A stretch of 64,000 nucleotides of DNA, from NCBI GenBank assembly GCA_002269645.1, contig NIVC01002610.1, forward strand, positions 48,167-112,166. Direction: 5' to 3'. The notes under the pieces were generated by a model. It ran no database searches and was not told where the DNA came from. It saw nothing but the letters and a program-made list of their open reading frames with translations. This document shows, piece after piece, positions 1,159 to 16,790 of the stretch (positions are counted from its first letter, which is position 1; the number at the start of each line of letters is the position of its first letter). Origin of the DNA: Macrostomum lignano (Eukaryota). Made by a program: the position numbers and the translations under genes.

Positions 1159-4100
1159 ATGGGCAATACTGGAAGCAAACTGAGCAACAATACTGATGAG
1201 CATTGGAGCGTAGCTGCAAAATACAAAGTCGTTGGATGGAGCGCTGGCGATGGCATCATTCATGTGGGCCCTTGGGAATCAACACATTATGACTATAAGG
1301 GTTTTCCTGTTAACATCTATTTTAAACACAAGACGCATAGTTTGTCAGATACGGTTAGTGACTCAGATATGAAATCATGGTGCTACGGTTTCACAAACAT
1401 GGAATGGAAACTGCATTCACCATCAGAAGGCGTCATCCATCTGGAATATAATGGAGGATATGTTGCAAACTACAAATACGAAACCAGATCGATGTTCGCC
1501 GCGAGAATGCGCAGAGAAAAAGAGCAGAGAATGCAAGGGGCGCTGGAGCAGCTGAAGCAGGGCGACAGGGAGCAGGCACTTTTTGATCAAAATAGGGCGG
1601 AGCAGCAGAAGGCTAAACAAAGTGCGATGCAAACTGAAAACAGACAGAAGTGGGAAATTTTGAATGCTGAGCGACACAGAGCTTTGGTGAACTTCAACCA
1701 TAAAACCAATGATTTCAGCAGAAGATGCGAGGCGACGAGGCAAGAGAGATTGGCCAAATACGAGGCGAGTAAAAAGCAAACCGAAACAGATCGAGCAGAA
1801 CACTTTGCCAGATTGCAGAAGCAAGCAAGAGACAGAACAGAATGCGAACAGCTATCTTTGGCTGATGAACAGGAGCAGGCAAATGCTATTCGCAAACAGA
1901 GACTTGAAGATTTTCAGCGTCAAAAAGTGAGAATCGCTTCAGAAACTAGCGAAAAAATTAGCAGTCTTTACAAGGAAGCTCAGGAAACCAGAGCTCGTTT
2001 GAGAGCTCAGTTTGAAGAGAGAAAAAGTACTTTTCAGGAACAGATGGAGCAAAAGAAAGCGCAGATGCAGCAGCAAAGCTCGGAGATGCAGGAGAGGCTG
2101 CAGTTGCAGCACAGGCAGTTGGAAATTGGCAAAGAAGAACTTTACCGCGAGTTGGTTGACAGGGAGGCTGAAATTGCCCGAAAAATAGAAGAGCAGCGGC
2201 GGCATCGAGCGGAGAAGCAACGGGAGTCTGAGAACCTGAAGAAAACAGAGCAGTTCAAGCGACAAATATTGATAGAGCTGGAGAGAGAGAGAGCCAAAGC
2301 TATGCGCAGACAATTTAAGAGTGTTAGCTACTCTATTCAGCACGTCCGTGGGAAGAGCGCCCAAGGCTATTCTAATCCTGAAGTAAGCGAAGCATCCGAA
2401 GTGATGCTCAGAGACCAGTTTGAAGAAAATGTTGAAGGTGCTTTGATGAAAGTTCTAGCCAGTCTGTCCAATGCTATCGAGGATGATTCCAATCAGGAAC
2501 TGTCAGTAGCAGCTAATGTCAAAACAATTTCTGCAAAGGACGCTTTAGATTTATTTAACCGTGTCTGGAAATCAGAAGGTCATCCGTTCGGAAATGATCC
2601 AACATCTAGCCAGTTGTCTCTTCTACAACTATTGGATGAAAAATTCGCTCAACAGTGTTTAGATGCGGCTAATAAAGTCTTCCGAGAGATCTGCTTTCCA
2701 AATTTAGAACTCGACATAGTCAGCTATGGTCTGCTGGTTTTTGTCCTGCACAGCGAAAAATCCAACGATATCAAGCACGAACAAGACTTCAGTGCTCTCC
2801 GTCAGCAACTCAGCGACACAAGAATTGCACTGGCGCATATGAGAAAGCTCACTAGTGAAACAGCGCACAATGAACCCAGTCCTGTCACTGAAAGGCTGCT
2901 CCAGCTGCTAGTTGTGGCTGAAGATGTTATTCGACTTTGGCCGATTCAACAAGACCCTGCTGCTGGTTTAAAGAGGCTCAGAGTCGTACTGGCAACGATG
3001 CTGAGGCATGCTGGTGTGTCGCAGTATTTGGATGAAAAATCCAACACTGAATGTGTCGTAGAGCTCATAACATCAATGCAGCATTGGGACCCTGTTAGCA
3101 TGCTCAAGCTGATGGAATTTATACATACGAGTAGCACCGAGCCCGATCAAGTGAGAGAATTCGTGAAGATGATGGTGTTGAGCCGCGGCGACCCCAGATC
3201 TCTTTCGAGTCCTCGCGAGGCGATTACGGAAACTTATATTGCGAGCCTAAAAAAAGCTCAAGCATCACAGAAAACACTTGACCAGCTTCTCGATGAGCTG
3301 AAGAAGACAGGGCAGTTCGACGAGGGTCAACTTTCAGAACTTGCTGACGTAGTAAGAAAAGTTTTCACATATTTTGATTCGTCTGGGCTCGATAAAGCAT
3401 TGCAGAAACTGAAAATATGGGAACGTGGTAAGGAATCGCCACTGCACAAAATTCTGATTGATCTCTGTAAGGCAGTGCTGAAATGCAAGGGATATCTCCC
3501 AAGACATACACAAGTATTCAGTACTGCGGCCCTCCTAAACGCTTTTAAAAACAAAGCAAGTGGGCAAGTATTACAGATCCTGACTGGTGAAGGAAAATCC
3601 TGCATTGTTGCAATGTCTGCTGTAGGATTGGTGCGTCTTGGACAGAAATCTGTTGATGTCGTGGCTCCGTCAGAAGTTTTGGCTGCGAGAGACTGTAAGG
3701 AATGGAAAGATTTCTATAAAATATGCCATGTTTCAGTTGACTGCAACATTGAGCATGAAGATCCCAAAAAGTGCTATGAATCGTGCATAGTGTATGGCAC
3801 AGTCTCTTCTTTCGCGGGCGACACATTGCGGCATGAGTTCCAGTTCAAAGACATCCGCGGCTCACGAGGCTTTGATTCAATAATCGTGGATGAAGTTGAC
3901 TCTCTGCTGCTGGACCAAGGTGTGCAGCTGACGTATCTGGCTCAGGACGCAGGTGACATGAAAATGCTGGATCCAATTTTCGCTACTATCTTTAGAGCCA
4001 CTCTGGGCTGCCACGTTCTCAACACAGCGCACGGAGGTGAGATGGTGGCAGAGCAACAAATGACTTTTCTCTACCTCATAAAAGAGTTCTTCTCGTATGA

Positions 4101-7100
4101 TGAAGAGTTCAGCACTTTGGTCGAGCAACTTGATCTCAAGCAGTTAATTAGTTCAGAGGAGAAACAGAGCTTCTTGGCTCAAAATGCCGAACCAGTCGAT
4201 TTGTCAAACTTTGATATTAAAAGGACGATTCAGGTTCTTGAAGTTTCTGGAGAATTTTTGCAAAATTTTCCATCGTATACAATTTATACATTTAGAAATG
4301 CTGAAATCGAACCAGTGCGGCTTTGCCAAGATAGCTCATTTGATTTTTTAGTCCAAGATGGTGGAGTCTGCAATTTGCTTTTTGAAAATATCGATGACTT
4401 CAAAACGCGAAAGAAGGCCGATATCTTGTCGAGAATAGACTACAGTACAACAATACTGGACCCTAAAGACGACGCCAAAAAGAAACAGAATGAAGAGGCC
4501 CAGCTGCCCATTCCATCGCATTTAAAGCAGTTCATAGATGACATGCTGGATGTCTGGATCAACAGTGCCCTCACTGCAGGAGCTCTGCAACCCGGTAGAG
4601 ACTACCTGCTTCAGGGTGGAGACGCTGTTCCAGTAGACTACAAGCACACAGGAGTGGTGCAGGAGAACATGAGATGGAGCGATGGGCTGCAGCAGTTTCT
4701 GCAGTTAAAACACAGTCTGCAAATGCGGCCTCTAGGATTGGAAACAAACTTCCTGTCAAACTTGGCCTTCTTCCGTCGATATGGCAAATCTGTGTTCGGT
4801 GTATCTGGAACTCTCGGAGAAGAGCATGAGAAAAATTTCATGCGGGAAACTTACAAAGTGCAACTGAACTACATTCCTCCGTACAGGGAGCGCCGGCTTG
4901 TGGAGAACCCGGGCATTGTGACAGAAACCAAGTCAGAGTGCATCACGAAAATTTGCCAGCTAGTTACACAGGAGAGAAATCGGCCCAGCTTGATCGTGTG
5001 CGAGGATATCAACAGTGCCGACCTCATTTTCGAAGAGGTAACTCGCCGTTGTCACGGAGTTAAGACTAAAAAGTACGTCAAGAATGAGGACACAAAAGAT
5101 GAACTTCAGGTGGGTCCCGGTGATGTTATTGTGGCCACGAATCTGGCAGGCAGGGGCACGGATGTGAAAGTGAGTGACGACGCGGAGACAGCGGGAGGTC
5201 TGCACGTTCTCGTCACATTCCTGCCTCTGAATCAGCGAGTTGAGGAGCAAGTGTTCGGCCGCAGTGGTCGCAAGGGCCAGCGGGGTTCAGCGACTTTGCT
5301 GCTAAGCAGAGAGGGCCTCAGTGCCTGCTTTTCAGACTGTGACTCTGTCGAAGAAATGAAGCAGGTGAGACGAGAGGCCAGCTTGCAGGAACTGAAGAAT
5401 CATGAGGAGTTCGCGCTGCCGGAAGTTGAGTTCAAGGAGAATCTTTTCAAGTGTATCAGTCATTTGCTATCGGAGTATTATCATCAGATAAAGAAACCTC
5501 CCAGCTCTGGTACAGAGCTAGAAAAGCGTTGGTCAGAGACGGACCTAAAATTAAAAATGGATTATTTAAAAGAGATTTGGGGCATGCATCTCAAAAAGAC
5601 ACTCTGTCACATTACTGATTTCAGTATAGAGAGAACAGCTCAGTGCATTGGAGAAGTTGAGAAAATGTTCCAGGAAGCAAAATCTAATGTCGAATCCGAG
5701 TGTTCATTGAGTCCTTTTCAAGCACTGAAGTTCGCAGAGAAAAGTGTAAGGCACGAAGATTTCGAGCGGGCCATTGATCTTTACACAAAAGCTATAAATA
5801 TGAACAGCTCATGGTCGTCTATCGCGTACTACAACAGAGCATACGCAAAAATAATGAAAGGCAACTGTGATATCAGAGAAGTGATGGACGACTTGAAAGA
5901 CGCAAAAGCTCGGATTGCAGAAACTTGGCTGGCCCATGCCACGTGGACGCAGCTGTACTCTGGCGCAAGAATCCAGCAGGAAAACGCAAGCGATAATGAC
6001 TGTGAGGAGGCTAAGAAGAAAACACCCAAAGACCAAGCGAATAAACAAGTTAAGGAAGAAGCCAGCCAAGATGTTCGAAGTGAAGCTGCAAACCCTCAGT
6101 TCCGTCAGTGCGTGGCTCGAATAAGGATAATCAGCAATTATAAAACCCAAATAGAAAAATGCCTGGAAAATCTGGAAGAGCACAGAAGAGCTGGTGATAA
6201 AATCATTGCTGTCAGCACTTGCATTAAGGAGATTGAGAAGGAGCCAGACAGCATTACACTTGACGAGCTCAAGTCACTGTACCATCTGGGTCATGTAAGA
6301 TTTTTTGATGTACAAAAGAAGCCTTCATATACATTAGCGATTGCTGTGGCGATTTTCGGTGCTTTTGAGATTGCACTTGGCAGCGCGCTGTGCTACTGTG
6401 GTCAGGTGAATGTCGGAAATTATTTTATCAATGAAGGCATTAATGATATAATGGCAGGTGTGATGGGAATGATTCAGGGTGATTTTAATTTAAAAGCCTG
6501 GCTAAAAAATAAAGCCATCAATATTGGTGTCAGCCTACTGACTTTTGGATTTAGAAAAGTTGCTAACTATCTTAAGTCTTCGGGAAAATTCGCATCTGTT
6601 GCGCAAAAAGTTAACTCAGCTGGGAGTACATTTTACACTAAAGCCGCATCAGTACTGAACAAAGTGATTGGACAAAACGCTGTTAAGTTTATTAAGACCA
6701 TAATGAGCAATCCAATTGTACAGAAAGTGACCGATTACGCGATAAGTGTAGCTCAAAGGAAACTGCTCGATCAGTTAATTGAAAAGTTAAAGCAGGACGT
6801 CCAAAGCGACGTTAAAGAGAAGTGCGCCTCTGAGGCTGAAAGCGGAAAACTTCATGACATTGTTCTCCGACTGACTGCTCCTCTCTGCTTAGTAAAGGAC
6901 CAGGAGACGAGTAAAATCGATTTATATGATTTTTCCACTCTAACTGATTCTCAAACCAAAATCATTTTACAGGCTCTTACCGCTATAGCACACGAAGCAA
7001 CAGATGAATTAATGTCTGATGTAAAAAATACGGCCAAAGTAATTGAAGCAATTAATTCACGATTGACTGTACTAAAAGACGAGTTCTCGCAACTCTTCAA

Positions 7101-7218
7101 AGGTATTCTGTCTTTTGTAAGACTGGCATCAGTAGCAGTGGATTCGGCAGCAATAGCAGAGCATGCAAAAACATTAAACAGCCTGGTAGGCAATACCAGG
7201 TGGACAAATTATTGCTGA
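1159..7218 (+). CDS. Large SecA-family (DEAD-like) ATPase protein: N-terminal beta-rich domain and coiled coil, SecA NBD1/NBD2, TPR, hydrophobic C-terminal segment; probably continues into the repeat ORF
   Basis: Uninterrupted ORF, first ATG at 1159 (MGNTGSK). SecA motifs appear in the correct order: QILTGEGKS (3574-3600, Walker A), VVAPSEVLAARD, IVYGTVSSFAGDTLR, IIVDEVDSLLLD (DEVD 3889-3900), RWSDGLQQ (4672), FFRRYGKSVFGVSGT, ATNLAGRGTD (5134), GGLHVLVT..QVFGRSGRKGQRG (5248). TPR-like FERAIDLYTKAINMNSSWSSIAYYNRA at about 5761-5845. Not labelled secA because the size and extra domains differ from the canonical translocase. Confidence 0.92.
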   Translation: MGNTGSKLSNNTDEHWSVAAKYKVVGWSAGDGIIHVGPWESTHYDYKGFPVNIYFKHKTHSLSDTVSDSDMKSWCYGFTNMEWKLHSPSEGVIHLEYNGGYVANYKYETRSMFAARMRREKEQRMQGALEQLKQGDREQALFDQNRAEQQKAKQSAMQTENRQKWEILNAERHRALVNFNHKTNDFSRRCEATRQERLAKYEASKKQTETDRAEHFARLQKQARDRTECEQLSLADEQEQANAIRKQRLEDFQRQKVRIASETSEKISSLYKEAQETRARLRAQFEERKSTFQEQMEQKKAQMQQQSSEMQERLQLQHRQLEIGKEELYRELVDREAEIARKIEEQRRHRAEKQRESENLKKTEQFKRQILIELERERAKAMRRQFKSVSYSIQHVRGKSAQGYSNPEVSEASEVMLRDQFEENVEGALMKVLASLSNAIEDDSNQELSVAANVKTISAKDALDLFNRVWKSEGHPFGNDPTSSQLSLLQLLDEKFAQQCLDAANKVFREICFPNLELDIVSYGLLVFVLHSEKSNDIKHEQDFSALRQQLSDTRIALAHMRKLTSETAHNEPSPVTERLLQLLVVAEDVIRLWPIQQDPAAGLKRLRVVLATMLRHAGVSQYLDEKSNTECVVELITSMQHWDPVSMLKLMEFIHTSSTEPDQVREFVKMMVLSRGDPRSLSSPREAITETYIASLKKAQASQKTLDQLLDELKKTGQFDEGQLSELADVVRKVFTYFDSSGLDKALQKLKIWERGKESPLHKILIDLCKAVLKCKGYLPRHTQVFSTAALLNAFKNKASGQVLQILTGEGKSCIVAMSAVGLVRLGQKSVDVVAPSEVLAARDCKEWKDFYKICHVSVDCNIEHEDPKKCYESCIVYGTVSSFAGDTLRHEFQFKDIRGSRGFDSIIVDEVDSLLLDQGVQLTYLAQDAGDMKMLDPIFATIFRATLGCHVLNTAHGGEMVAEQQMTFLYLIKEFFSYDEEFSTLVEQLDLKQLISSEEKQSFLAQNAEPVDLSNFDIKRTIQVLEVSGEFLQNFPSYTIYTFRNAEIEPVRLCQDSSFDFLVQDGGVCNLLFENIDDFKTRKKADILSRIDYSTTILDPKDDAKKKQNEEAQLPIPSHLKQFIDDMLDVWINSALTAGALQPGRDYLLQGGDAVPVDYKHTGVVQENMRWSDGLQQFLQLKHSLQMRPLGLETNFLSNLAFFRRYGKSVFGVSGTLGEEHEKNFMRETYKVQLNYIPPYRERRLVENPGIVTETKSECITKICQLVTQERNRPSLIVCEDINSADLIFEEVTRRCHGVKTKKYVKNEDTKDELQVGPGDVIVATNLAGRGTDVKVSDDAETAGGLHVLVTFLPLNQRVEEQVFGRSGRKGQRGSATLLLSREGLSACFSDCDSVEEMKQVRREASLQELKNHEEFALPEVEFKENLFKCISHLLSEYYHQIKKPPSSGTELEKRWSETDLKLKMDYLKEIWGMHLKKTLCHITDFSIERTAQCIGEVEKMFQEAKSNVESECSLSPFQALKFAEKSVRHEDFERAIDLYTKAINMNSSWSSIAYYNRAYAKIMKGNCDIREVMDDLKDAKARIAETWLAHATWTQLYSGARIQQENASDNDCEEAKKKTPKDQANKQVKEEASQDVRSEAANPQFRQCVARIRIISNYKTQIEKCLENLEEHRRAGDKIIAVSTCIKEIEKEPDSITLDELKSLYHLGHVRFFDVQKKPSYTLAIAVAIFGAFEIALGSALCYCGQVNVGNYFINEGINDIMAGVMGMIQGDFNLKAWLKNKAINIGVSLLTFGFRKVANYLKSSGKFASVAQKVNSAGSTFYTKAASVLNKVIGQNAVKFIKTIMSNPIVQKVTDYAISVAQRKLLDQLIEKLKQDVQSDVKEKCASEAESGKLHDIVLRLTAPLCLVKDQETSKIDLYDFSTLTDSQTKIILQALTAIAHEATDELMSDVKNTAKVIEAINSRLTVLKDEFSQLFKGILSFVRLASVAVDSAAIAEHAKTLNSLVGNTRWTNYC

Positions 7219-7247
7219 AGAGACAATGGAAAATAAAATTTGACCAG

Positions 7248-10200
7248 ACCATTGACATCCGAAGCGAAAAGCTGCAGAGAAAAGAATGCATCAAACCACT
7301 CTGTAAAGCTACTGGAAAAGAGCTGGAGCAGCGCATCATTGAATGCGTCATTGTAATACTGGAAGAGCACATCCGTAAAAACCTAGATGGCATTGTGGAA
7401 AACAGCATTGAACAAGCAAAAAAATTCATTGGAAAAACATTTAAAACCGCACATAAAGAAAATACAGCTAATAAAAAGATACCATCCATCAAAAATAAAA
7501 ATATTGAAGAATCCGAAAAAGCCGGAATAAAGAAATTCATGAAGAAGACTAAAGTCACTGCTACAGACTCCGGTGTGGAGCTAGCTAATGCAGACACAAA
7601 ACTAGCGGTCAGGACTGGCGACTCTGGAGTGAGTGTGGCCGTTCAGCACAAAGACATCGCTCTCGGCGTGTCTCACGGATCGGACGGTTCTACAGAAGTG
7701 GCCGCGAGCAAGGGCGACAGCAAACTAGCGGTCAAGGCTGGCGACTCTGGAGTGAGTGTGGCCGTTCAGCACAAAGACATCGCTCTCGGCGTGTCTCACG
7801 GATCGGACGGTTCTACAGAAGTGGCCGCGAGCAAGGGCGACAGCAAACTAGCGGTCAAGGCTGGCGACTCTGGAGTGAGTGTGGCCGCTCAGCACAAAGA
7901 CATCGCTCTCGGCGTGTCTCACGGATCGGACAGTTCTACAGAAGTGGCCGCGAGCAAGGGCGACAGCAAACTAGCGGTCAAGGCTGGCGACTCTGGAGTG
8001 AGTGTGGCCGCTCAGCACAAAGACATCGCTCTCGGCGTGTCTCACGGATCGGACGGTTCTACAGAAGTGGCCGCGAGCAAGGGCGACAGCAAACTAGCGG
8101 TCAAGGCTGGCGACTCTGGAGTGAGTGTGGCCGCTCAGCACAAAGACATCGCTCTCGGCGTGTCTCACGGATCGGACGGTTCTACAGAAGTGGCCGCGAG
8201 CAAAAGCGACAGCAAACTAGCGGTCAAGGCTGGCGACTCTGGAGTGAGTGTGGCCGCTCAGCACAAAGACATCGCTCTCGGCGTGTCTCACGGATCGGAC
8301 AGTTCTACAGAAGTGGCCGCGAGCAAGGGCGACAGCAAACTAGCGGTCAAGGCTGGCGACTCTGGAGTGAGTGTGGCCGCTCAGCACAAAGACATCGCTC
8401 TCGGCGTGTCTCACGGATCGGACAGTTCTACAGAAGTGGCCGCGAGCAAGGGCGACAGCAAACTAGCGGTCAAGGCTGGCGACTCTGGAGTGAGTGTGGC
8501 CGCTCAGCACAAAGACATCGCTCTCGGCGTGTCTCACGGATCGGACAGTTCTACAGAAGTGGCCGCGAGCAAGGGCGACAGCAAACTAGCGGTCAAGGCT
8601 GGCGACTCTGGAGTGAGTGTGGCCGCTCAGCACAAAGACATCGCTCTCGGCGTGTCTCACGGATCGGACAGTTCTACAGAAGTGGCCGCGAGCAAGGGCG
8701 ACAGCAAACTAGCGGTCAAGGCTGGCGACTCTGGAGTGAGTGTGGCCGCTCAGCACAAAGACATCGCTCTCGGTGTGTCTCACGGATCGGACAGTTCTAC
8801 AGAAGTGGCCGCGAGCAAGGGCGACAGCAAACTAGCGGTCAAGGCTGGCGACTCTGGAGTGAGTGTGGCCGCTCAGCACAAAGACATGGCTCTCGGCGTG
8901 TCTCACGGATCGGACAGTTCTACAGAAGTGGCCGCGAGCAAGGGCGACAGCAAACTAGCGGTCAAGGCTGGCGACTCTGGAGTGAGTGTGGCCGCTCAGC
9001 ACAAAGACATCGCTCTCGCGTGTCTCACGGATCGGACAGTTCTACAGAAGTGGCCGCGAGCAAGGGCGACAGCAAACTAGCGGTCAAGGCTGGCGACTCT
9101 GGAGTGAGTGTGGCCGCTCAGCACAAAGACATCGCTCTCGGCGTGTCTCACGGATCGGACAGTTCTACAGAAGTGGCCGCGAGCAAGGGCGACAGCAAAC
9201 TAGCGGTCAAGGCTGGCGACTCTGGAGTGAGTGTGGCCGCTCAGCACAAAGACATCGCTCTCGGCGTGTCTCACGGATCGGACGGTTCTACAGAAGTGGC
9301 CGCGAGCAAGGGCGACAGCAAACTAGCGGTCAAGGCTGGCGACTCTGGAGTGAGTGTGGCCGCTCAGCACAAAGACATCGCTCTCGGCGTGTCTCACGGA
9401 TCGGACGGTTCTACAGAAGTGGCCGCGAGCAAGCGACAGCAAACTAGCGGTCAAGGCTGGCGACTCTGGAGTGAGTGTGGCCGCTCAGCACAAAGACATC
9501 GCTCTCGGCGTGTCTCACGGATCGGACGGTTCTACAGAAGTGGCCGCGAGCAAGGGCGACAGCAAACTAGCGGTCAAGGCTGGCGACTCTGGAGTGAGTG
9601 TGGCCGCTCAGCACAAAGACATCGCTCTCGGCGTGTCTCACGGATCGGACAGTTCTACAGAAGTGGCCGCGAGCAAGGGCGACAGCAAACTAGCGGTCAA
9701 GGCTGGCGACTCTGGAGTGAGTGTGGCCGCTCAGCACAAAGACATCGCTCTCGGCGTGTCTCACGGATCGGACAGTTCTACAGAAGTGGCCGCGAGCAAG
9801 GGCGACAGCAAACTAGCGGTCAAGGCTGGCGACTCTGGAGTGAGTGTGGCCGCTCAGCACAAAGACATCGCTCTCGGTGTGTCTCACGGATCGGACAGTT
9901 CTACAGAAGTGGCCGCGAGCAAGGGCGACAGCAAACTAGCGGTCAAGGCTGGCGACTCTGGAGTGAGTGTGGCCGCTCAGCACAAAGACATGGCTCTCGG
10001 CGTGTCTCACGGATCGGACAGTTCTACAGAAGTGGCCGCGAGCAAGGGCGACAGCAAACTAGCGGTCAAGGCTGGCGACTCTGGAGTGAGTGTGGCCGCT
10101 CAGCACAAAGACATCGCTCTCGGCGTGTCTCACGGATCGGACAGTTCTACAGAAGTGGCCGCGAGCAAGGGCGACAGCAAACTAGCGGTCAAGGCTGGCG

Positions 10201-13200
10201 ACTCTGGAGTGAGTGTGGCCGCTCAGCACAAAGACATCGCTCTCGGCGTGTCTCACGGATCGGACAGTTCTACAGAAGTGGCCGCGAGCAAGGGCGACAG
10301 CAAACTAGCGGTCAAGGCTGGCGACTCTGGAGTGAGTGTGGCCGCTCAGCACAAAGACATCGCTCTCGGCGTGTCTCACGGATCGGACGGTTCTACAGAA
10401 GTGGCCGCGAGCAAGGGCGACAGCAAACTAGCGGTCAAGGCTGGCGACTCTGGAGTGAGTGTGGCCGCTCAGCACAAAGACATCGCTCTCGGCGTGTCTC
10501 ACGGATCGGACGGTTCTACAGAAGTGGCCGCGAGCAAGCGACAGCAAACTAGCGGTCAAGGCTGGCGACTCTGGAGTGAGTGTGGCCGCTCAGCACAAAG
10601 ACATCGCTCTCGGCGTGTCTCACGGATCGGACGGTTCTACAGAAGTGGCCGCGAGCAAGCGACAGCAAACTAGCGGTCAAGGCTGGCGACTCTGGAGTGA
10701 GTGTGGCCGCTCAGCACAAAGACATCGCTCTCGGCGTGTCTCACGGATCGGACAGTTCTACAGAAGTGGCCGCGAGCAAGGGCGACAGCAAACTAGCGGT
10801 CAAGGCTGGCGACTCTGGAGTGAGTGTGGCCGCTCAGCACAAAGACATGGCTCTCGGCGTGTCTCACGGATCGGACGGTTCTACAGAAGTGGCCGCGAGC
10901 AAGGGCGACAGCAAACTAGCGGTCAAGGCTGGCGACTCTGGAGTGAGTGTGGCCGCTCAGCACAAAGACATCGCTCTCGGCGTGTCTCACGGATCGGACA
11001 GTTCTACAGAAGTGGCCGCGAGCAAGCGACAGCAAACTAGCGGTCAAGGCTGGCGACTCTGGAGTGAGTGTGGCCGCTCAGCACAAAGACATGGCTCTCG
11101 GCGTGTCTCACGGATCGGACAGTTCTACAGAAGTGGCCGCGAGCAAGGGCGACAGCAAACTAGCGGTCAAGGCTGGCGACTCTGGAGTGAGTGTGGCCGC
11201 TCAGCACAAAGACATCGCTCTCGGCGTGTCTCACGGATCGGACGGTTCTACAGAAGTGGCCGCGAGCAAGCGACAGCAAACTAGCGGTCAAGGCTGGCGA
11301 CTCTGGAGTGAGTGTGGCCGCTCAGCACAAAGACATCGCTCTCGGCGTGTCTCACGGATCGGACAGTTCTACAGAAGTGGCCGCGAGCAAGGGCGACAGC
11401 AAACTAGCGGTCAAGGCTGGCGACTCTGGAGTGAGTGTGGCCGCTCAGCACAAAGACATGGCTCTCGGCGTGTCTCACGGATCGGACGGTTCTACAGAAG
11501 TGGCCGCGAGCAAGGGCGACAGCAAACTAGCGGTCAAGGCTGGCGACTCTGGAGTGAGTGTGGCCGCTCAGCACAAAGACATCGCTCTCGGCGTGTCTCA
11601 CGGATCGGACAGTTCTACAGAAGTGGCCGCGAGCAAGGGCGACAGCAAACTAGCGGTCAAGGCTGGCGACTCTGGAGTGAGTGTGGCCGCTCAGCACAAA
11701 GACATCGCTCTCGGCGTGTCTCACGGATCGGACAGTTCTACAGAAGTGGCCGCGAGCAAGGGCGACAGCAAACTAGCGGTCAAGGCTGGCGACTCTGGAG
11801 TGAGTGTGGCCGCTCAGCACAAAGACATGGCTCTCGGCGTGTCTCACGGATCGGACAGTTCTACAGAAGTGGCCGCGAGCAAGGGCGACAGCAAACTAGC
11901 GGTCAAGGCTGGCGACTCTGGAGTGAGTGTGGCCGCTCAGCACAAAGACATCGCTCTCGGCGTGTCTCACGGATCGGACGGTTCTACAGAAGTGGCCGCG
12001 AGCAAGGGCGACAGCAAACTAGCGGTCAAGGCTGGCGACTCTGGAGTGAGTGTGGCCGCTCAGCACAAAGACATCGCTCTCGGCGTGTCTCACGGATCGG
12101 ACGGTTCTACAGAAGTGGCCGCGAGCAAAAGCGACAGCAAACTAGCGGTCAAGGCTGGCGACTCTGGAGTGAGTGTGGCCGCTCAGCACAAAGACATCGC
12201 TCTCGGCGTGTCTCACGGATCGGACGGTTCTACAGAAGTGGCCGCGAGCAAGCGACAGCAAACTAGCGGTCAAGGCTGGCGACTCTGGAGTGAGTGTGGC
12301 CGCTCAGCACAAAGACATCGCTCTCGGCGTGTCTCACGGATCGGACAGTTCTACAGAAGTGGCCGCGAGCAAGGGCGACAGCAAACTAGCGGTCAAGGCT
12401 GGCGACTCTGGAGTGAGTGTGGCCGCTCAGCACAAAGACATGGCTCTCGGCGTGTCTCACGGATCGGACGGTTCTACAGAAGTGGCCGCGAGCAAGGGCG
12501 ACAGCAAACTAGCGGTCAAGGCTGGCGACTCTGGAGTGAGTGTGGCCGCTCAGCACAAAGACATCGCTCTCGGCGTGTCTCACGGATCGGACAGTTCTAC
12601 AGAAGTGGCCGCGAGCAAAAGCGACAGCAAACTAGCGGTCAAGGCTGGCGACTCTGGAGTGAGTGTGGCCGCTCAGCACAAAGACATGGCTCTCGGCGTG
12701 TCTCACGGATCGGACAGTTCTACAGAAGTGGCCGCGAGCAAGGGCGACAGCAAACTAGCGGTCAAGGCTGGCGACTCTGGAGTGAGTGTGGCCGCTCAGC
12801 ACAAAGACATCGCTCTCGGCGTGTCTCACGGATCGGACGGTTCTACAGAAGTGGCCGCGAGCAAGCGACAGCAAACTAGCGGTCAAGGCTGGCGACTCTG
12901 GAGTGAGTGTGGCCGCTCAGCACAAAGACATCGCTCTCGGCGTGTCTCACGGATCGGACAGTTCTACAGAAGTGGCCGCGAGCAAGGGCGACAGCAAACT
13001 AGCGGTCAAGGCTGGCGACTCTGGAGTGAGTGTGGCCGCTCAGCACAAAGACATGGCTCTCGGCGTGTCTCACGGATCGGACGGTTCTACAGAAGTGGCC
13101 GCGAGCAAGGGCGACAGCAAACTAGCGGTCAAGGCTGGCGACTCTGGAGTGAGTGTGGCCGCTCAGCACAAAGACATCGCTCTCGGCGTGTCTCACGGAT

Positions 13201-14627
13201 CGGACAGTTCTACAGAAGTGGCCGCGAGCAAAAGCGACAGCAAACTAGCGGTCAAGGCTGGCGACTCTGGAGTGAGTGTGGCCGCTCAGCACAAAGACAT
13301 GGCTCTCGGCGTGTCTCACGGATCGGACAGTTCTACAGAAGTGGCCGCGAGCAAGGGCGACAGCAAACTAGCGGTCAAGGCTGGCGACTCTAGAGTGAGT
13401 GTGGCCGCTCAGCACAAAGACATCGCTCTCGGCGTGTCTCACGGATCGGATGGTTCTACAGAAGTGGCCGCGAGCAAAAGCGACAGCAAACTAGCGGTCA
13501 AGGCTGGCGACTCTGGAGTGAGTGTGGCCGCTCAGCACAAAGACATCGCTCTCGGCGTGTCTCACGGATCGGACAGTTCTACAGAAGTGGCCGCGAGCAA
13601 GGGCGACAGCAAACTAGCGGTCAAGGCTGGCGACTCTGGAGTGAGTGTGGCCGCTCAGCACAAAGACATCGCTCTCGGCGTGTCTCACGGATCGGACAGT
13701 TCTACAGAAGTGGCCGCGAGCAAGGGCGACAGCAAACTAGCGGTCAAGGCTGGCGACTCTGGAGTGAGTGTGGCCGCTCAGCACAAAGACATCGCTCTCG
13801 GCGTGTCTCACGGATCGGACAGTTCTACAGAAGTGGCCGCGAGCAAGGGCGACAGCAAACTAGCGGTCAAGGCTGGCGACTCTGGAGTGAGTGTGGCCGC
13901 TCAGCACAAAGACATGGCTCTCGGCGTGTCTCATGGATCGGACAGTTCTACAGAAGTGGCCGCGAGCAAGGGCGACAGCAAACTAGCGGTCAAGGCTGGC
14001 GACTCTAGAGTGAGTGTGGCCGCTCAGCACAAAGACATCGCTCTCGGCGTGTCTCACGGATCGGATGGTTCTACAGAAGTGGCCGCGAGCAAAAGCGACA
14101 GCAAACTAGCGGTCAAGGCTGGCGACTCTGGAGTGAGTGTGGCCGCTCAGCACAAAGACATCGCTCTCGGCGTGTCTCACGGATCGGACAGTTCTACAGA
14201 AGTGGCCGCGAGCAAGGGCGACAGCAAACTAGCGGTCAAGGCTGGCGACTCTGGAGTGAGTGTGGCCGCTCAGCACAAAGACATCGCTCTCGGCGTGTCT
14301 CATGGATCGGACAGTTCTACAGAAGTGGCCGCGAGCAAGGGCGACAGCAAACTAGCGGTCAAGGCTGGCGACTCTGGAGTGAGTGTGGCCGCTCAGCACA
14401 AAGACATCGCTCTCGGCGTGTCTCACGGATCGGACAGTTCTACAGAAGTGGCCGCGAGCAAGGGCGACAGCAAACTAGCGGTCAAGGCTGGCGACTCTGG
14501 AGTGAGTGTGGCCGCTCAGCACAAAGACATCGCTCTCGGCGTGTCTCATGGATCGGACAGTTCTACAGAAGTGGCCGCGAGCAAGGGCGACAGCAAACTA
14601 GCGGTCAAGGCTGGTGAATCTCTATAA
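7248..14627 (+). CDS. Probable C-terminal continuation of the SecA-like protein: about 120 aa unique linker plus about 57 x 41-aa repeats; interrupted by 8 small deletions as assembled
   Basis: The frame open from 7200 runs from unique sequence directly into the repeat frame, with degenerate first units (TATDSGVELANADTKLAVRTGDSG). The array ends in a unique in-frame KLAVKAGESL-stop (TAA 14625-14627). Deletions: 1 nt at about 9018 and 2 nt at about 9431, 10535, 10657, 11024, 11268, 12250 and 12863. Confidence 0.62.
7599..14614 (+). repeat. 123-bp tandem repeat, about 57 near-identical copies, unit KGDSKLAVKAGDSGVSVAAQHKDIALGVSHGSDSSTEVAAS
   Basis: Directly visible period of 123 bp, with seven 121-bp variant units and one 122-bp unit. 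Confidence 0.98.
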
Positions 14628-15445: not shown

Positions 15446-15740
15446 AAATACTGTTTTGTATTATTTCTGGTTTAACATTGTCAATTTTTAAAATGGCTTT
15501 AAAATCATGCAAAAACTCATGGACAAAATATTGAATTTAGGGTTTTGGTTAGGGTTAGGGTTAGGGTTAGAAGTTTTACAGGAGATTTTTTAAGATTTCA
15601 AGGCTACATGTAGCTTATTAAAAAAACGTGTATTGCATTTATTTGGCTCCCCAACGGGGGGGCGTAGATTGCTAGTAAATATTGTTTTGTATTATTTTCT
15701 GGTTTAACATTGTTAATTTTTAAAATGGCTTTAAAATCAT
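15446..15740 (+). repeat. About 63-bp direct repeats (15446-15508, 15677-15740) flanking a segment with (TTAGGG)3 and a Helitron-like 3' end
   Basis: Two near-identical copies of AAATA(C/T)TGTTTTGTATTATTT..TTTAAAATCAT. TTAGGG x3 at about 15549-15570. GC hairpin 15646-15663 followed 8 nt later by CTAG|T (15672-15676). Confidence 0.55.
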
Positions 15741-16202
15741 TTGATTTCAAACACACTACTACATGTATATGTTACTGTACCTTCGTAGCTTTTTTGTCGA
15801 ACGTATATCGAACGCACCAAAAGCCGAATTACAATCTTTATTTTATTTTAAGAGGAGTATATAGCTCGTATGAATTAAATAAATTATCGGAAAAAGTCTG
15901 AGATTTGATGTGAACAGCAAATTTACTGATGATTATGTACATAGGCTACACTCGGCGACTTAAAATAAAGGCTCATTCCCATTGCAATCAAATTCAACCA
16001 ACCAAATACTACGATCAATGTACAAATGAACCAAATTTGATGTACAAGTCGCGTTATCAAACGAAATTGGACCAGATTAGATGGTGTTTTGAATGAACGA
16101 AGTTAGGGCTGCGATGGACACTCCTGTGTGAGTTTGGCCTGCTGTGCATATGGTTGCCGTACGTATCCGAGCGCTTGCATGTGTGCCTGGTCGGGGGGTG
16201 TC

Positions 16203-16219
16203 GTCTGTCTGTCTGTCTC

Positions 16220-16259
<40 letters not shown>

Positions 16260-16285
16260 CCTGCCTGTCTGTCTTTGTCTTTCTA

Positions 16286-16320
<35 letters not shown>

Positions 16321-16640
16321 CTCTGTCTGTCTGTCTGTCTGCCTGTCTGTCTGTCTTTGTCTTTCTATCTGTCTGTCTGTCTGTCCGTCTGTCTGTCTGT
16401 CTGTCTATCTGTCTGTCTTGTGTCTGTCTGTCTGGGTGTCTGTCTGTCTGCCTGTCTGTCTGTCTGTCTGTCCTAGTGTCTGTCTGTCTGTCTATCTGTC
16501 TGTCTTACTGTCTGTCTGTCTGGGTGTCTGTCTGTCTGCCTGTCTGTCTGTCTGTCTGTCCGTCCGTCTGTCTGTCTGTCTATCTGTCTGTCTTAGTGTC
16601 TGTCTGTCTGTCTGTCTGTCTGTCTTAGTGTCTGTCTGAG

Positions 16641-16671
<31 letters not shown>

Positions 16672-16672
16672 G

Positions 16673-16729
<57 letters not shown>

Positions 16730-16790
16730 GACTGTCTGTCTGTCCGTCTGTCTGTCTGTCTGTCTGTCCTAGCGTCTGTCTGTCTGTCTG
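16203..16790. repeat. Imperfect (GTCT)n microsatellite
   Basis: Direct inspection; the VCLS/TDRQ ORFs here are translation artefacts. Confidence 0.97.

Follow-up and report, generated by a model that had tools for sequence, protein, structure and literature searches.

A 64,000-nucleotide stretch of the flatworm Macrostomum lignano genome (NCBI GenBank assembly GCA_002269645.1, contig NIVC01002610.1, positions 48,167 to 112,166 of the forward strand; hereafter the window, with positions counted from its first letter) contains at 7599-14621 one tandem array with a period of 123 bp (41 codons), 57.2 copies and 98% matches (Tandem Repeats Finder, score 13528). A preliminary description of this DNA had reported a 41-residue unit in about 57 copies, and the array agrees with it in both respects. 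Judged from its sequence, the array is probably a young coding minisatellite tail. We rate as about even the chance that it forms the C-terminal tail of a giant SecA-like ATPase encoded upstream of it, in which it would serve as a ribbon of beta-hairpins with a structural role.

The majority unit, present as 21 identical DNA copies, translates to KLAVKAGDSGVSVAAQHKDIALGVSHGSDSSTEVAASKGDS, and the same peptide is encoded by 25 of the 49 intact units. Peptide variants number nine among these 49, and their common changes are I20M, S30G and G39S. The unit peptide has a net charge of about −1, its tryptic peptides are AGDSGVSVAAQHK, DIALGVSHGSDSSTEVAASK and DMALGVSHGSDGSTEVAASK, and the translation of the majority unit confirms the earlier remark that aromatic residues, Cys and Pro are absent (Phe, Trp, Tyr, Cys and Pro do not occur). 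No further copies of the unit were found in the remaining window or in the 10 kb upstream. The description of the unit as two related halves of 20-21 residues holds in a modest form: the circular self-comparison peaks at shifts of 20/21, with 11 of 41 identities and a BLOSUM score of 26 (about the 99th percentile of shuffles), a second peak lies at shifts of 9 and 32 (score 27), and the halves align as LAVKAG-DSGVSVAAQHKD against LGVSHGSDSSTEVAASKGD. At the DNA level the halves are barely alike, with 42 of 123 identities at shifts of 60/63. Halves that are alike as protein but hardly as DNA fit an old hairpin duplication that was kept at the protein level before the 123-bp unit was amplified. 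The period is a multiple of three (3 × 41) and in frame with a unique, coding-like linker. Two further coding signals are weak, namely the order GC1 > GC3 > GC2 of the GC content at the codon positions of the unit frame, which is the same as in the upstream open reading frame (ORF), and the codon-usage score of this frame, which is the best of the three. All three minus-strand frames of the unit contain stops.

In-frame entry of the array from unique sequence, as already proposed in the preliminary description, was borne out. A linker of 133 codons (7200-7598, + strand), rich in Lys and Glu, reads without a stop into the unit frame. This frame stays open in only 11 of 200000 shuffles of the linker (p ~5e-5), the DNA of which has 37% GC, and the other two plus-strand frames contain 7 and 14 stops. 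There is no in-frame ATG before 7539, and the linker therefore looks like a continuation and not like a separate gene. When 1.84 billion representative proteins were searched exhaustively with HMMER, no homologue of the linker was retrieved. Upstream, from 7056 to 7216, the frame of the linker (frame 2) overlaps the ORF of the putative host gene (frame 0). GT-AG pairs were enumerated with the requirement that the intron length be 2 mod 3, and a candidate microintron of 83 nt at 7117-7199 (+; TTT/GTAAGA...ATACCAG/G, with slashes at the splice sites) would connect exon 1 of the host gene, in frame 0, with the frame that the linker and the array share. Microintrons are reported in flatworms, M. 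lignano included (PMC6530080). The join could instead be made by a 62-nt intron at 7186-7247, or by a single base that the assembly may have lost between 7056 and 7216; an intron at 7103-7199 (AAG/GTATTC...CAG) was rejected because its 97 nt give the wrong phase. The sequence leads us to infer that the SecA-like gene continues, presumably by splicing, through the linker and at least as far as the twelfth unit of the array. Opposite the linker lies an antisense ORF of 166 aa (7097-7597, − strand), which has many Phe, Leu, Ser and Met residues and no family match; we rejected it as a gene, as it is most likely a hydrophobic shadow cast by the K/E-rich frame of the sense strand.

Exon 1 of the host gene (1159-7116, +) encodes a giant SecA_DEAD-like ATPase, as recognised by Pfam matches, homologues and hydropathy. 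If unspliced, the ORF at 1159-7218 (+) gives a protein of 2019 aa (P0001) and ends with TGA at 7216-7218. It matches the Pfam families SecA_DEAD (E 1.1e-23, 84.3 bits, gathering cut-off 24.6) and P-loop_SecA (E 5e-8, 33.2 bits, gathering cut-off 27). Its N-terminus MGNTGSK is an N-myristoylation-type motif. Hydropathy places a hydrophobic module at about aa 1722-1800, and giant homologues have conserved it: a newt protein of 3090 aa, an ant protein of 3132 aa and one of 3490 aa from an ENA record. Past this module the homologues continue with long, variable and unrelated tails of hundreds to thousands of residues. When these homologues were compared with the window by tblastn, no similarity extended beyond 6726, and the exon junction can therefore not be placed by homology. 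The family is patchy in animals, with members in flatworm, newt and ant and in ENA metagenome records, and the next-best matches are bacterial SecA proteins. The host ORF also contains a stretch rich in E/R/Q/K at about aa 120-400, and the newt homologue carries a precomputed match to PF18818, which we take to be a polyvalent-protein metallopeptidase domain.

The repeat has relatives of very different quality in the same protein collection. The HMMER search returned 71 matches, all of them to the repeat, and the best was P0054 (E 6.1e-33, 131 bits), a protein of 1859 aa encoded on a 2.13-Mb contig of ENA assembly ERZ25878582 (locus L002). The C-terminus of P0054 consists of about 19-22 copies of a 20-aa hairpin unit, HKDTSFGVESNKDGMKFAGK. 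The copies are 60-bp DNA repeats, 75% alike and with a 180-bp higher order, and they lie inside an intact ORF; an intact ORF with diverged copies shows that this kind of repeat is translated elsewhere. The P0054 repeat and the array in the window are 33-35% identical over ~280 aa, with one gap per 41 aa, and the window unit scores better than all of its composition-preserving shuffles, 5000 of 5000 by pair score and 2000 of 2000 against the P0054 profile. The similarity amounts to only ~18 bits per unit in a protein selected from 1.84 billion, and the E-value is inflated by repetition. Homology of the window unit and the P0054 repeat is plausible, although chance combined with repetition may also account for the similarity. 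Both share the motif VA[AG]QHKD-xx-LGV...D[GS]...A with a spacing of 20/21 residues, and in both the repeat would be the C-terminal tail of a very large protein, predicted to form a continuous beta-meander. In contrast to the window array with its period of 41 aa, P0054 has a period of 20 aa (60 bp); its copies are old (75% DNA identity) and its ORF is intact, whereas the window copies are 98% identical and their frame is broken. HKD occurs in every hairpin of P0054 but only in one half of the window unit, and the protein that carries the P0054 repeat has a Fil_haemagg_2 haemagglutinin-type repeat and no SecA domain.

Behind the stop codon of P0054, at 15581-15869 of its locus, decayed 60-bp copies with in-frame stops were observed. 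The P0054 array is possibly eroding at its 3' end, which may be a parallel to the frame-broken array in the window. Upstream of P0054, at 3685-9065 of the locus, lie two ORFs (343 and 1450 aa) with a 4-nt overlap (ATGA) and no Pfam match, the shorter of which looks beta-helix-like by eye. A reverse-transcriptase fragment and a low ORF density suggest that this contig is eukaryotic. Scans with back-translated motifs found no relatives of the repeat in JGI metagenome contigs or in GTDB bacterial and archaeal genomes, and NCBIfam gave no match to the array. A word-indexed protein search with the linker and four units also had no match, a result of little weight because the tool misses even P0054 when queried with its own repeat. 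Some Pfam matches were discarded. LEA_5 (PF00477) reached 45.8 bits on a 613-aa ORF fragment (cut-off 40), but no single stretch passes, and on seven units it scored 25.9 bits, which makes it an artefact of composition and repetition; BRX_N, Corona_NS4, EAD10 and other matches are sums of weak repeat matches. The array probably lies outside WD40 and every curated family, and its nearest relative is an uncharacterised metagenomic protein.

The predicted structure of the repeat is that of an all-beta protein. For seven window units, AlphaFold2 run without an alignment gave a model with a mean predicted local distance difference test score (pLDDT) of 70 and a predicted template modelling score (pTM) of 0.60. 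DSSP assigned the strands LAVKA, SVAAQH, IALGVSH and TEVAAS to each unit of the model, in agreement with the four strands that had been read from the sequence before. The best Foldseek matches of this model are single-layer-sheet variants of OspA, which are weak (E ~1e-2, template modelling (TM) score ~0.2), and no propeller is among its matches. The repeat of P0054 was modelled with a pLDDT of 94 in four of five models, as a perfect meander of 28 eight-residue strands with two-residue turns. Its Foldseek matches are the ApoB100 structures 9e9r/9ea7 (TMq 0.5), of which the matched part is presumably the long beta-sheet belt of ApoB100, and engineered OspA (probability 1.0). Both models point to an open, continuous antiparallel meander. 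Thus, among the folds put forward earlier, the long beta-meander is the one favoured by the models, while a closed propeller was not seen. The single-layer sheets of OspA and ApoB100 are the best structural matches and, like the predicted ribbon, are long antiparallel meanders of successive hairpins; the OspA mutants resemble the window model, and ApoB100 and engineered OspA resemble the P0054 model. In contrast to the array, the known single-layer sheets are not near-perfect tandem repeats, and a sequence relation to them is absent.

The reading of the array as a protein tail has to be weighed against the assembled sequence, and a number of observations, given here and in the following paragraphs, count against it. 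Anchored on the unit start, 49 units are 123 bp long, one is 122 bp and seven are 121 bp. In unit 11, at ~9018, one G of CTCGGCG is gone (CTCGCG), and units 14, 23, 24, 27, 29, 37 and 42 share an identical 2-bp loss (AAGGGC or AAAAGC to AAGC), with the deletion sites after 9433, 10538, 10659, 11026, 11270, 12252 and 12865. The k-mers that span the deletions are GAGCAAGCGACAGC, with the intact versions GAGCAAGGGCGACAGC and GAGCAAAAGCGACAGC, and CTCTCGCGTGTC, with the intact version CTCTCGGCGTGTC. The frame of array entry is open from 7056 and stops at TAG 9078-9080, after the twelfth unit; no frame spans the assembled array, which appears in the ORF listing as nine overlapping fragments and not as one ORF. 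Along the plus strand, units 0-10 and the first half of unit 11 (7599-9017) form an intact 41-codon repeat in frame with the linker, followed by the segment with the 1-bp deletion of unit 11 and the first in-frame stop (9018-9080). In the middle of the array (units 12-42, 9081-12872), with its seven 121-bp units, the unit frame hops among the three genomic frames. The fourteen intact units 43-56 (12873-14594) are again in the genomic frame of units 0-11, and the partial last unit KLAVKAGESL with TAA 14625-14627 (14595-14627) passes into AT-rich unique sequence. Only because the deletions total 15 nt do the last 15 units return to the genomic frame of the first 12 and reach this TAA. An agreement with a one-in-three chance is no evidence for coding, and we dropped the 15-nt sum as support because it is uninformative under either model. 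The preliminary description had taken in-frame entry from unique sequence and exit into a unique stop as support for coding status. With eight frameshifts and a stop after the twelfth unit this argument is not supported across the array, and the terminal stop, 10 codons into AT-rich sequence, says nothing. Among the frames of the unit on the plus strand, one is the array-entry frame, a second is open yet gives a nonsensical peptide (TSGQGWRLWSECGR...) and the third contains TAG and TGA.

It is fairly probable that the eight deletions are consensus errors in a repeat that short-read polishing could not reach. The assembly (Mlig_3_7, NIVC00000000) was made with Canu 1.4 from PacBio continuous long reads (CLR) and polished solely by Pilon with Illumina and RNA-seq reads. 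All eight length changes are deletions, and the array in which they lie is, at 7 kb, beyond unique polishing by short reads. What the 2-bp deletion takes away is precisely nt 114-115, the sole dimorphic dinucleotide of the unit; most units have GG there, whereas units 4, 36, 40, 45, 47 and 52 have AA. Within the higher-order pattern, each 2-bp-deleted unit occupies the expected slot of an AA-type unit with the same allele at nt 88: 'M e m' (units 26-28) parallels 'M a m' (units 39-41 and 44-46), and 'g d' (units 13-14 and 22-23) parallels 'g A' (units 3-4 and 35-36). The deletion is found on both nt-88 backgrounds (A and G), and this recurrence makes a systematic mis-call of the minority allele a simpler explanation than one spreading mutation; real deletions would need recurrent mutation or very short conversion tracts. 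We consider it somewhat less probable, yet a serious possibility, that the deletions are real, in which case only ~12 units would be translated. The array would then be a truncated or decaying coding minisatellite with a protein that ends after ~12 units and a short missense tail (stop at 9078-9080), and the remaining 45 units would be untranslated 3' sequence that is still homogenised by unequal crossing-over. This scenario takes the sequence as assembled. The 121-bp variant is found inside higher-order blocks that have been duplicated (units 42-46 repeat units 37-41), and six of its seven copies have 88G, as expected for a heritable variant; a real variant spread by unequal crossing-over would likewise produce one 2-bp loss shared by seven units, some of them in duplicated blocks. 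In addition, slippage in vivo is plausible at the A4 run of the AA-type allele, a 2-bp loss is atypical of homopolymer error, and the other arrays in the window lack the excess of indels that would mark an error-prone consensus. Substitutions between the units comprise 11 kinds, 7 non-synonymous and 4 synonymous (3 of the latter being CpG transitions), and no purifying selection between units is visible in them. In view of the identical deletion on two backgrounds and in AA-type slots, and of the one-sided length changes in a region unreachable for short-read polishing, we regard the decaying minisatellite as rather doubtful.

Coding minisatellites, also known as variable number tandem repeats (VNTRs), are carried by large animal genes, for example in the tandem-repeat exons of mucins. 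The array resembles mucin-type VNTRs in its period, which is a multiple of three, in its near-identical copies and duplicated higher-order blocks and in its location in a putative single large exon, and such VNTRs are likewise prone to real frameshift alleles and to assembly errors. In contrast to mucins, the unit is not Pro/Thr/Ser-rich or glycosylation-like, and a folded beta structure is predicted instead of an extended glycosylated rod. The array could also be an ordinary non-coding minisatellite that expanded next to or into the 3' end of a gene, with open frames that are incidental and never translated. Its surroundings agree with this, as the contig holds more than 25 unrelated micro- and minisatellite arrays, and the same crowding with non-coding satellites speaks against a translated tail. 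The GC content of the array (60%) is unlike that of the gene and of the flanks (37-46%). For a 123-bp unit of 60% GC the chance of an open frame is estimated at ~26% per frame, and two of the three plus-strand frames are open. The gene caller behind the protein collection ends the gene at 7218 and calls nothing in the array, which besides has its eight frameshifts and lacks a selection signal; relatives of the repeat were found neither in M. lignano nor in other flatworm proteins of the collection. However, an incidental satellite leaves several features unexplained. The linker is clearly coding-like, lacks a start codon of its own and reads into a protein-like frame, the period is divisible by three, the similarity of the unit halves as protein and hardly as DNA fits a coding origin, and the unit resembles a hairpin repeat translated in another organism far better than do its own shuffles (0 of 2000). 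We therefore judge an untranslated, non-coding minisatellite to be improbable. Also the predicted fold calls for restraint: the window model was made from a single sequence with a pLDDT of only 70, and single-sequence AlphaFold tends to make perfect repeats too regular. For the beta hydrophobic moment, the unit has 1.78 and its shuffles have 1.56 ± 0.31 (p = 0.24); the amphipathicity expected of a lipid-facing belt such as that of ApoB100 is thus not significant in the window unit, and an amphipathic lipid-binding belt was rejected.

Another explanation concerns the nature of the unit, which might be a divergent WD40 blade, the array then being a string of about eight seven-bladed propellers. 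The unit has 41 aa with four strands, and 57 units are near 8 × 7. A sequence search of the PDB matched 2YMU, a WD40 protein of Nostoc punctiforme with 41-aa near-identical blades, in register with one gap per unit, and with conserved H, GV, D(G)xT, AS, KL and G (whole-sequence E 3.3e-8). Most of the 71 HMMER matches are WD40 and STAND-NTPase proteins, down to E 2.8e-19, and the hairpins of P0054 give a faint match to the Pfam family NBCH_WD40 (E 5e-4, below the cut-off). Against this, single stretches of the 2YMU match reach an E of only 0.3-0.9, and the sums re-use one periodic match; a shared period of 41-42 residues in query and targets inflates the E-values of the WD40 matches. Unrelated blade families (YVTN, BNR-like and FG-GAP) were matched too, and we therefore read the signal as a generic likeness of four-strand repeats of ~41 residues with turn-rich loops. 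Pfam WD40 (PF00400) and propeller models gave no match to the ORFs of the array at E <= 0.1 and none to seven units at E <= 10. The GH...WD signature is absent, as the unit has QH, no Trp or other aromatic residue, and Ala at the Trp position of the KLW motif. The shuffle test is biased in this respect, since its profile was built from matches that the query itself had selected. The 20-aa period of P0054 cannot tell connections within a blade from those between blades, and the seven-unit AlphaFold model is open, with no propeller among its Foldseek matches. Compared with repetitive WD40 propellers such as 2YMU and those of STAND-type NTPases, the array shares a four-strand unit of 41-42 residues, the recent amplification into near-identical copies and the aligned His, Gly-Val, Asp-Gly-x-Thr, Ala-Ser and Lys-Leu positions. 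It differs in lacking Trp and the GH/WD signature, in failing Pfam WD40, in not being predicted to close into a propeller and in having 57 units where those proteins have multiples of seven behind a STAND-type NTPase. We thus consider it very unlikely that the unit is a WD40 blade. The earlier impression of a WD40-like spacing is correct as far as the spacing and a few residues are concerned, which 2YMU and the WD40/STAND matches support; membership in WD40 is not supported, given the Pfam result, the absence of Trp and the open model.

The remainder of the window is rich in other repeats. About 0.9 kb downstream of the array, at 15537-15570, there are 5.7 interstitial copies of the telomere-type hexamer TTAGGG. 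From 16199 to 50985 follows a mosaic of ~35 kb with more than 25 unrelated micro- and minisatellite arrays and locally strong strand skews. The arrays include (TGTC)n at 16199-16790, (ACAG)n at 29150-31043, a 34-bp unit in 32 copies at 32828-33908 and a 17-bp unit in 114 copies at 41810-43713. At 41118-41377, 4.3 copies of a 61-bp unit have the palindromic core CACGTGAC. Many spurious ORFs of more than 200 aa lie inside the arrays of this mosaic. Neither Rfam families nor tRNAs were found when the whole window was scanned for them.

Returning to the array as a young coding minisatellite tail, we propose the following origin. A segment of 41 aa with two hairpins at the C-terminal end of the SecA-like ATPase gene may have been amplified very recently, and it would have grown by unequal crossing-over, as suggested by the 98% identity and by duplicated blocks of 5 and 9 units. 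The array would be the last exon of the host gene, spliced to the SecA-like ORF. The ATPase itself is probably N-myristoylated and membrane-associated, with the hydrophobic module placed before the tail. Each unit would consist of two related beta-hairpins, that is, four short strands with Gly/Ser/Asp turns between them, and in the models successive hairpins pair into one long, open, antiparallel beta-meander ribbon. If translated, the tail would be a hydrophilic hairpin ribbon of up to ~2,340 residues, and its most likely role would be that of a long, hydrophilic and repetitive structural extension, for example a spacer or a multivalent surface. That the array is translated in full, giving ~2,300 residues with 114 near-identical hairpins in one single-layer ribbon on a membrane-associated SecA-like motor, is a bold extension of this proposal and in our view a long shot.

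The two accounts of the frameshifts have different consequences. If they are real, the array would be a snapshot of a coding minisatellite that is decaying into a satellite. If they are artefacts, the ORF would extend over about 4,400 codons, and the array would be a concrete warning that repeat-rich genes may come out broken when a long-read assembly is polished with short reads alone. The giant SecA-like ATPases to which the host belongs are an unstudied family with a scattered occurrence in animals. If translated, its tail would be among the longest and most uniform beta-hairpin repeats known, with no Pfam family and one distant relative, and, in a transgenic flatworm model, a natural and genetically tractable case for studying single-layer beta-sheets and the evolution of repeat proteins, in which blades and hairpins are amplified from a single peptide. 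Full translation, if true, would make it a new class of giant animal repeat protein and a live example of how a folded beta architecture arises by the recent amplification of a two-hairpin peptide.

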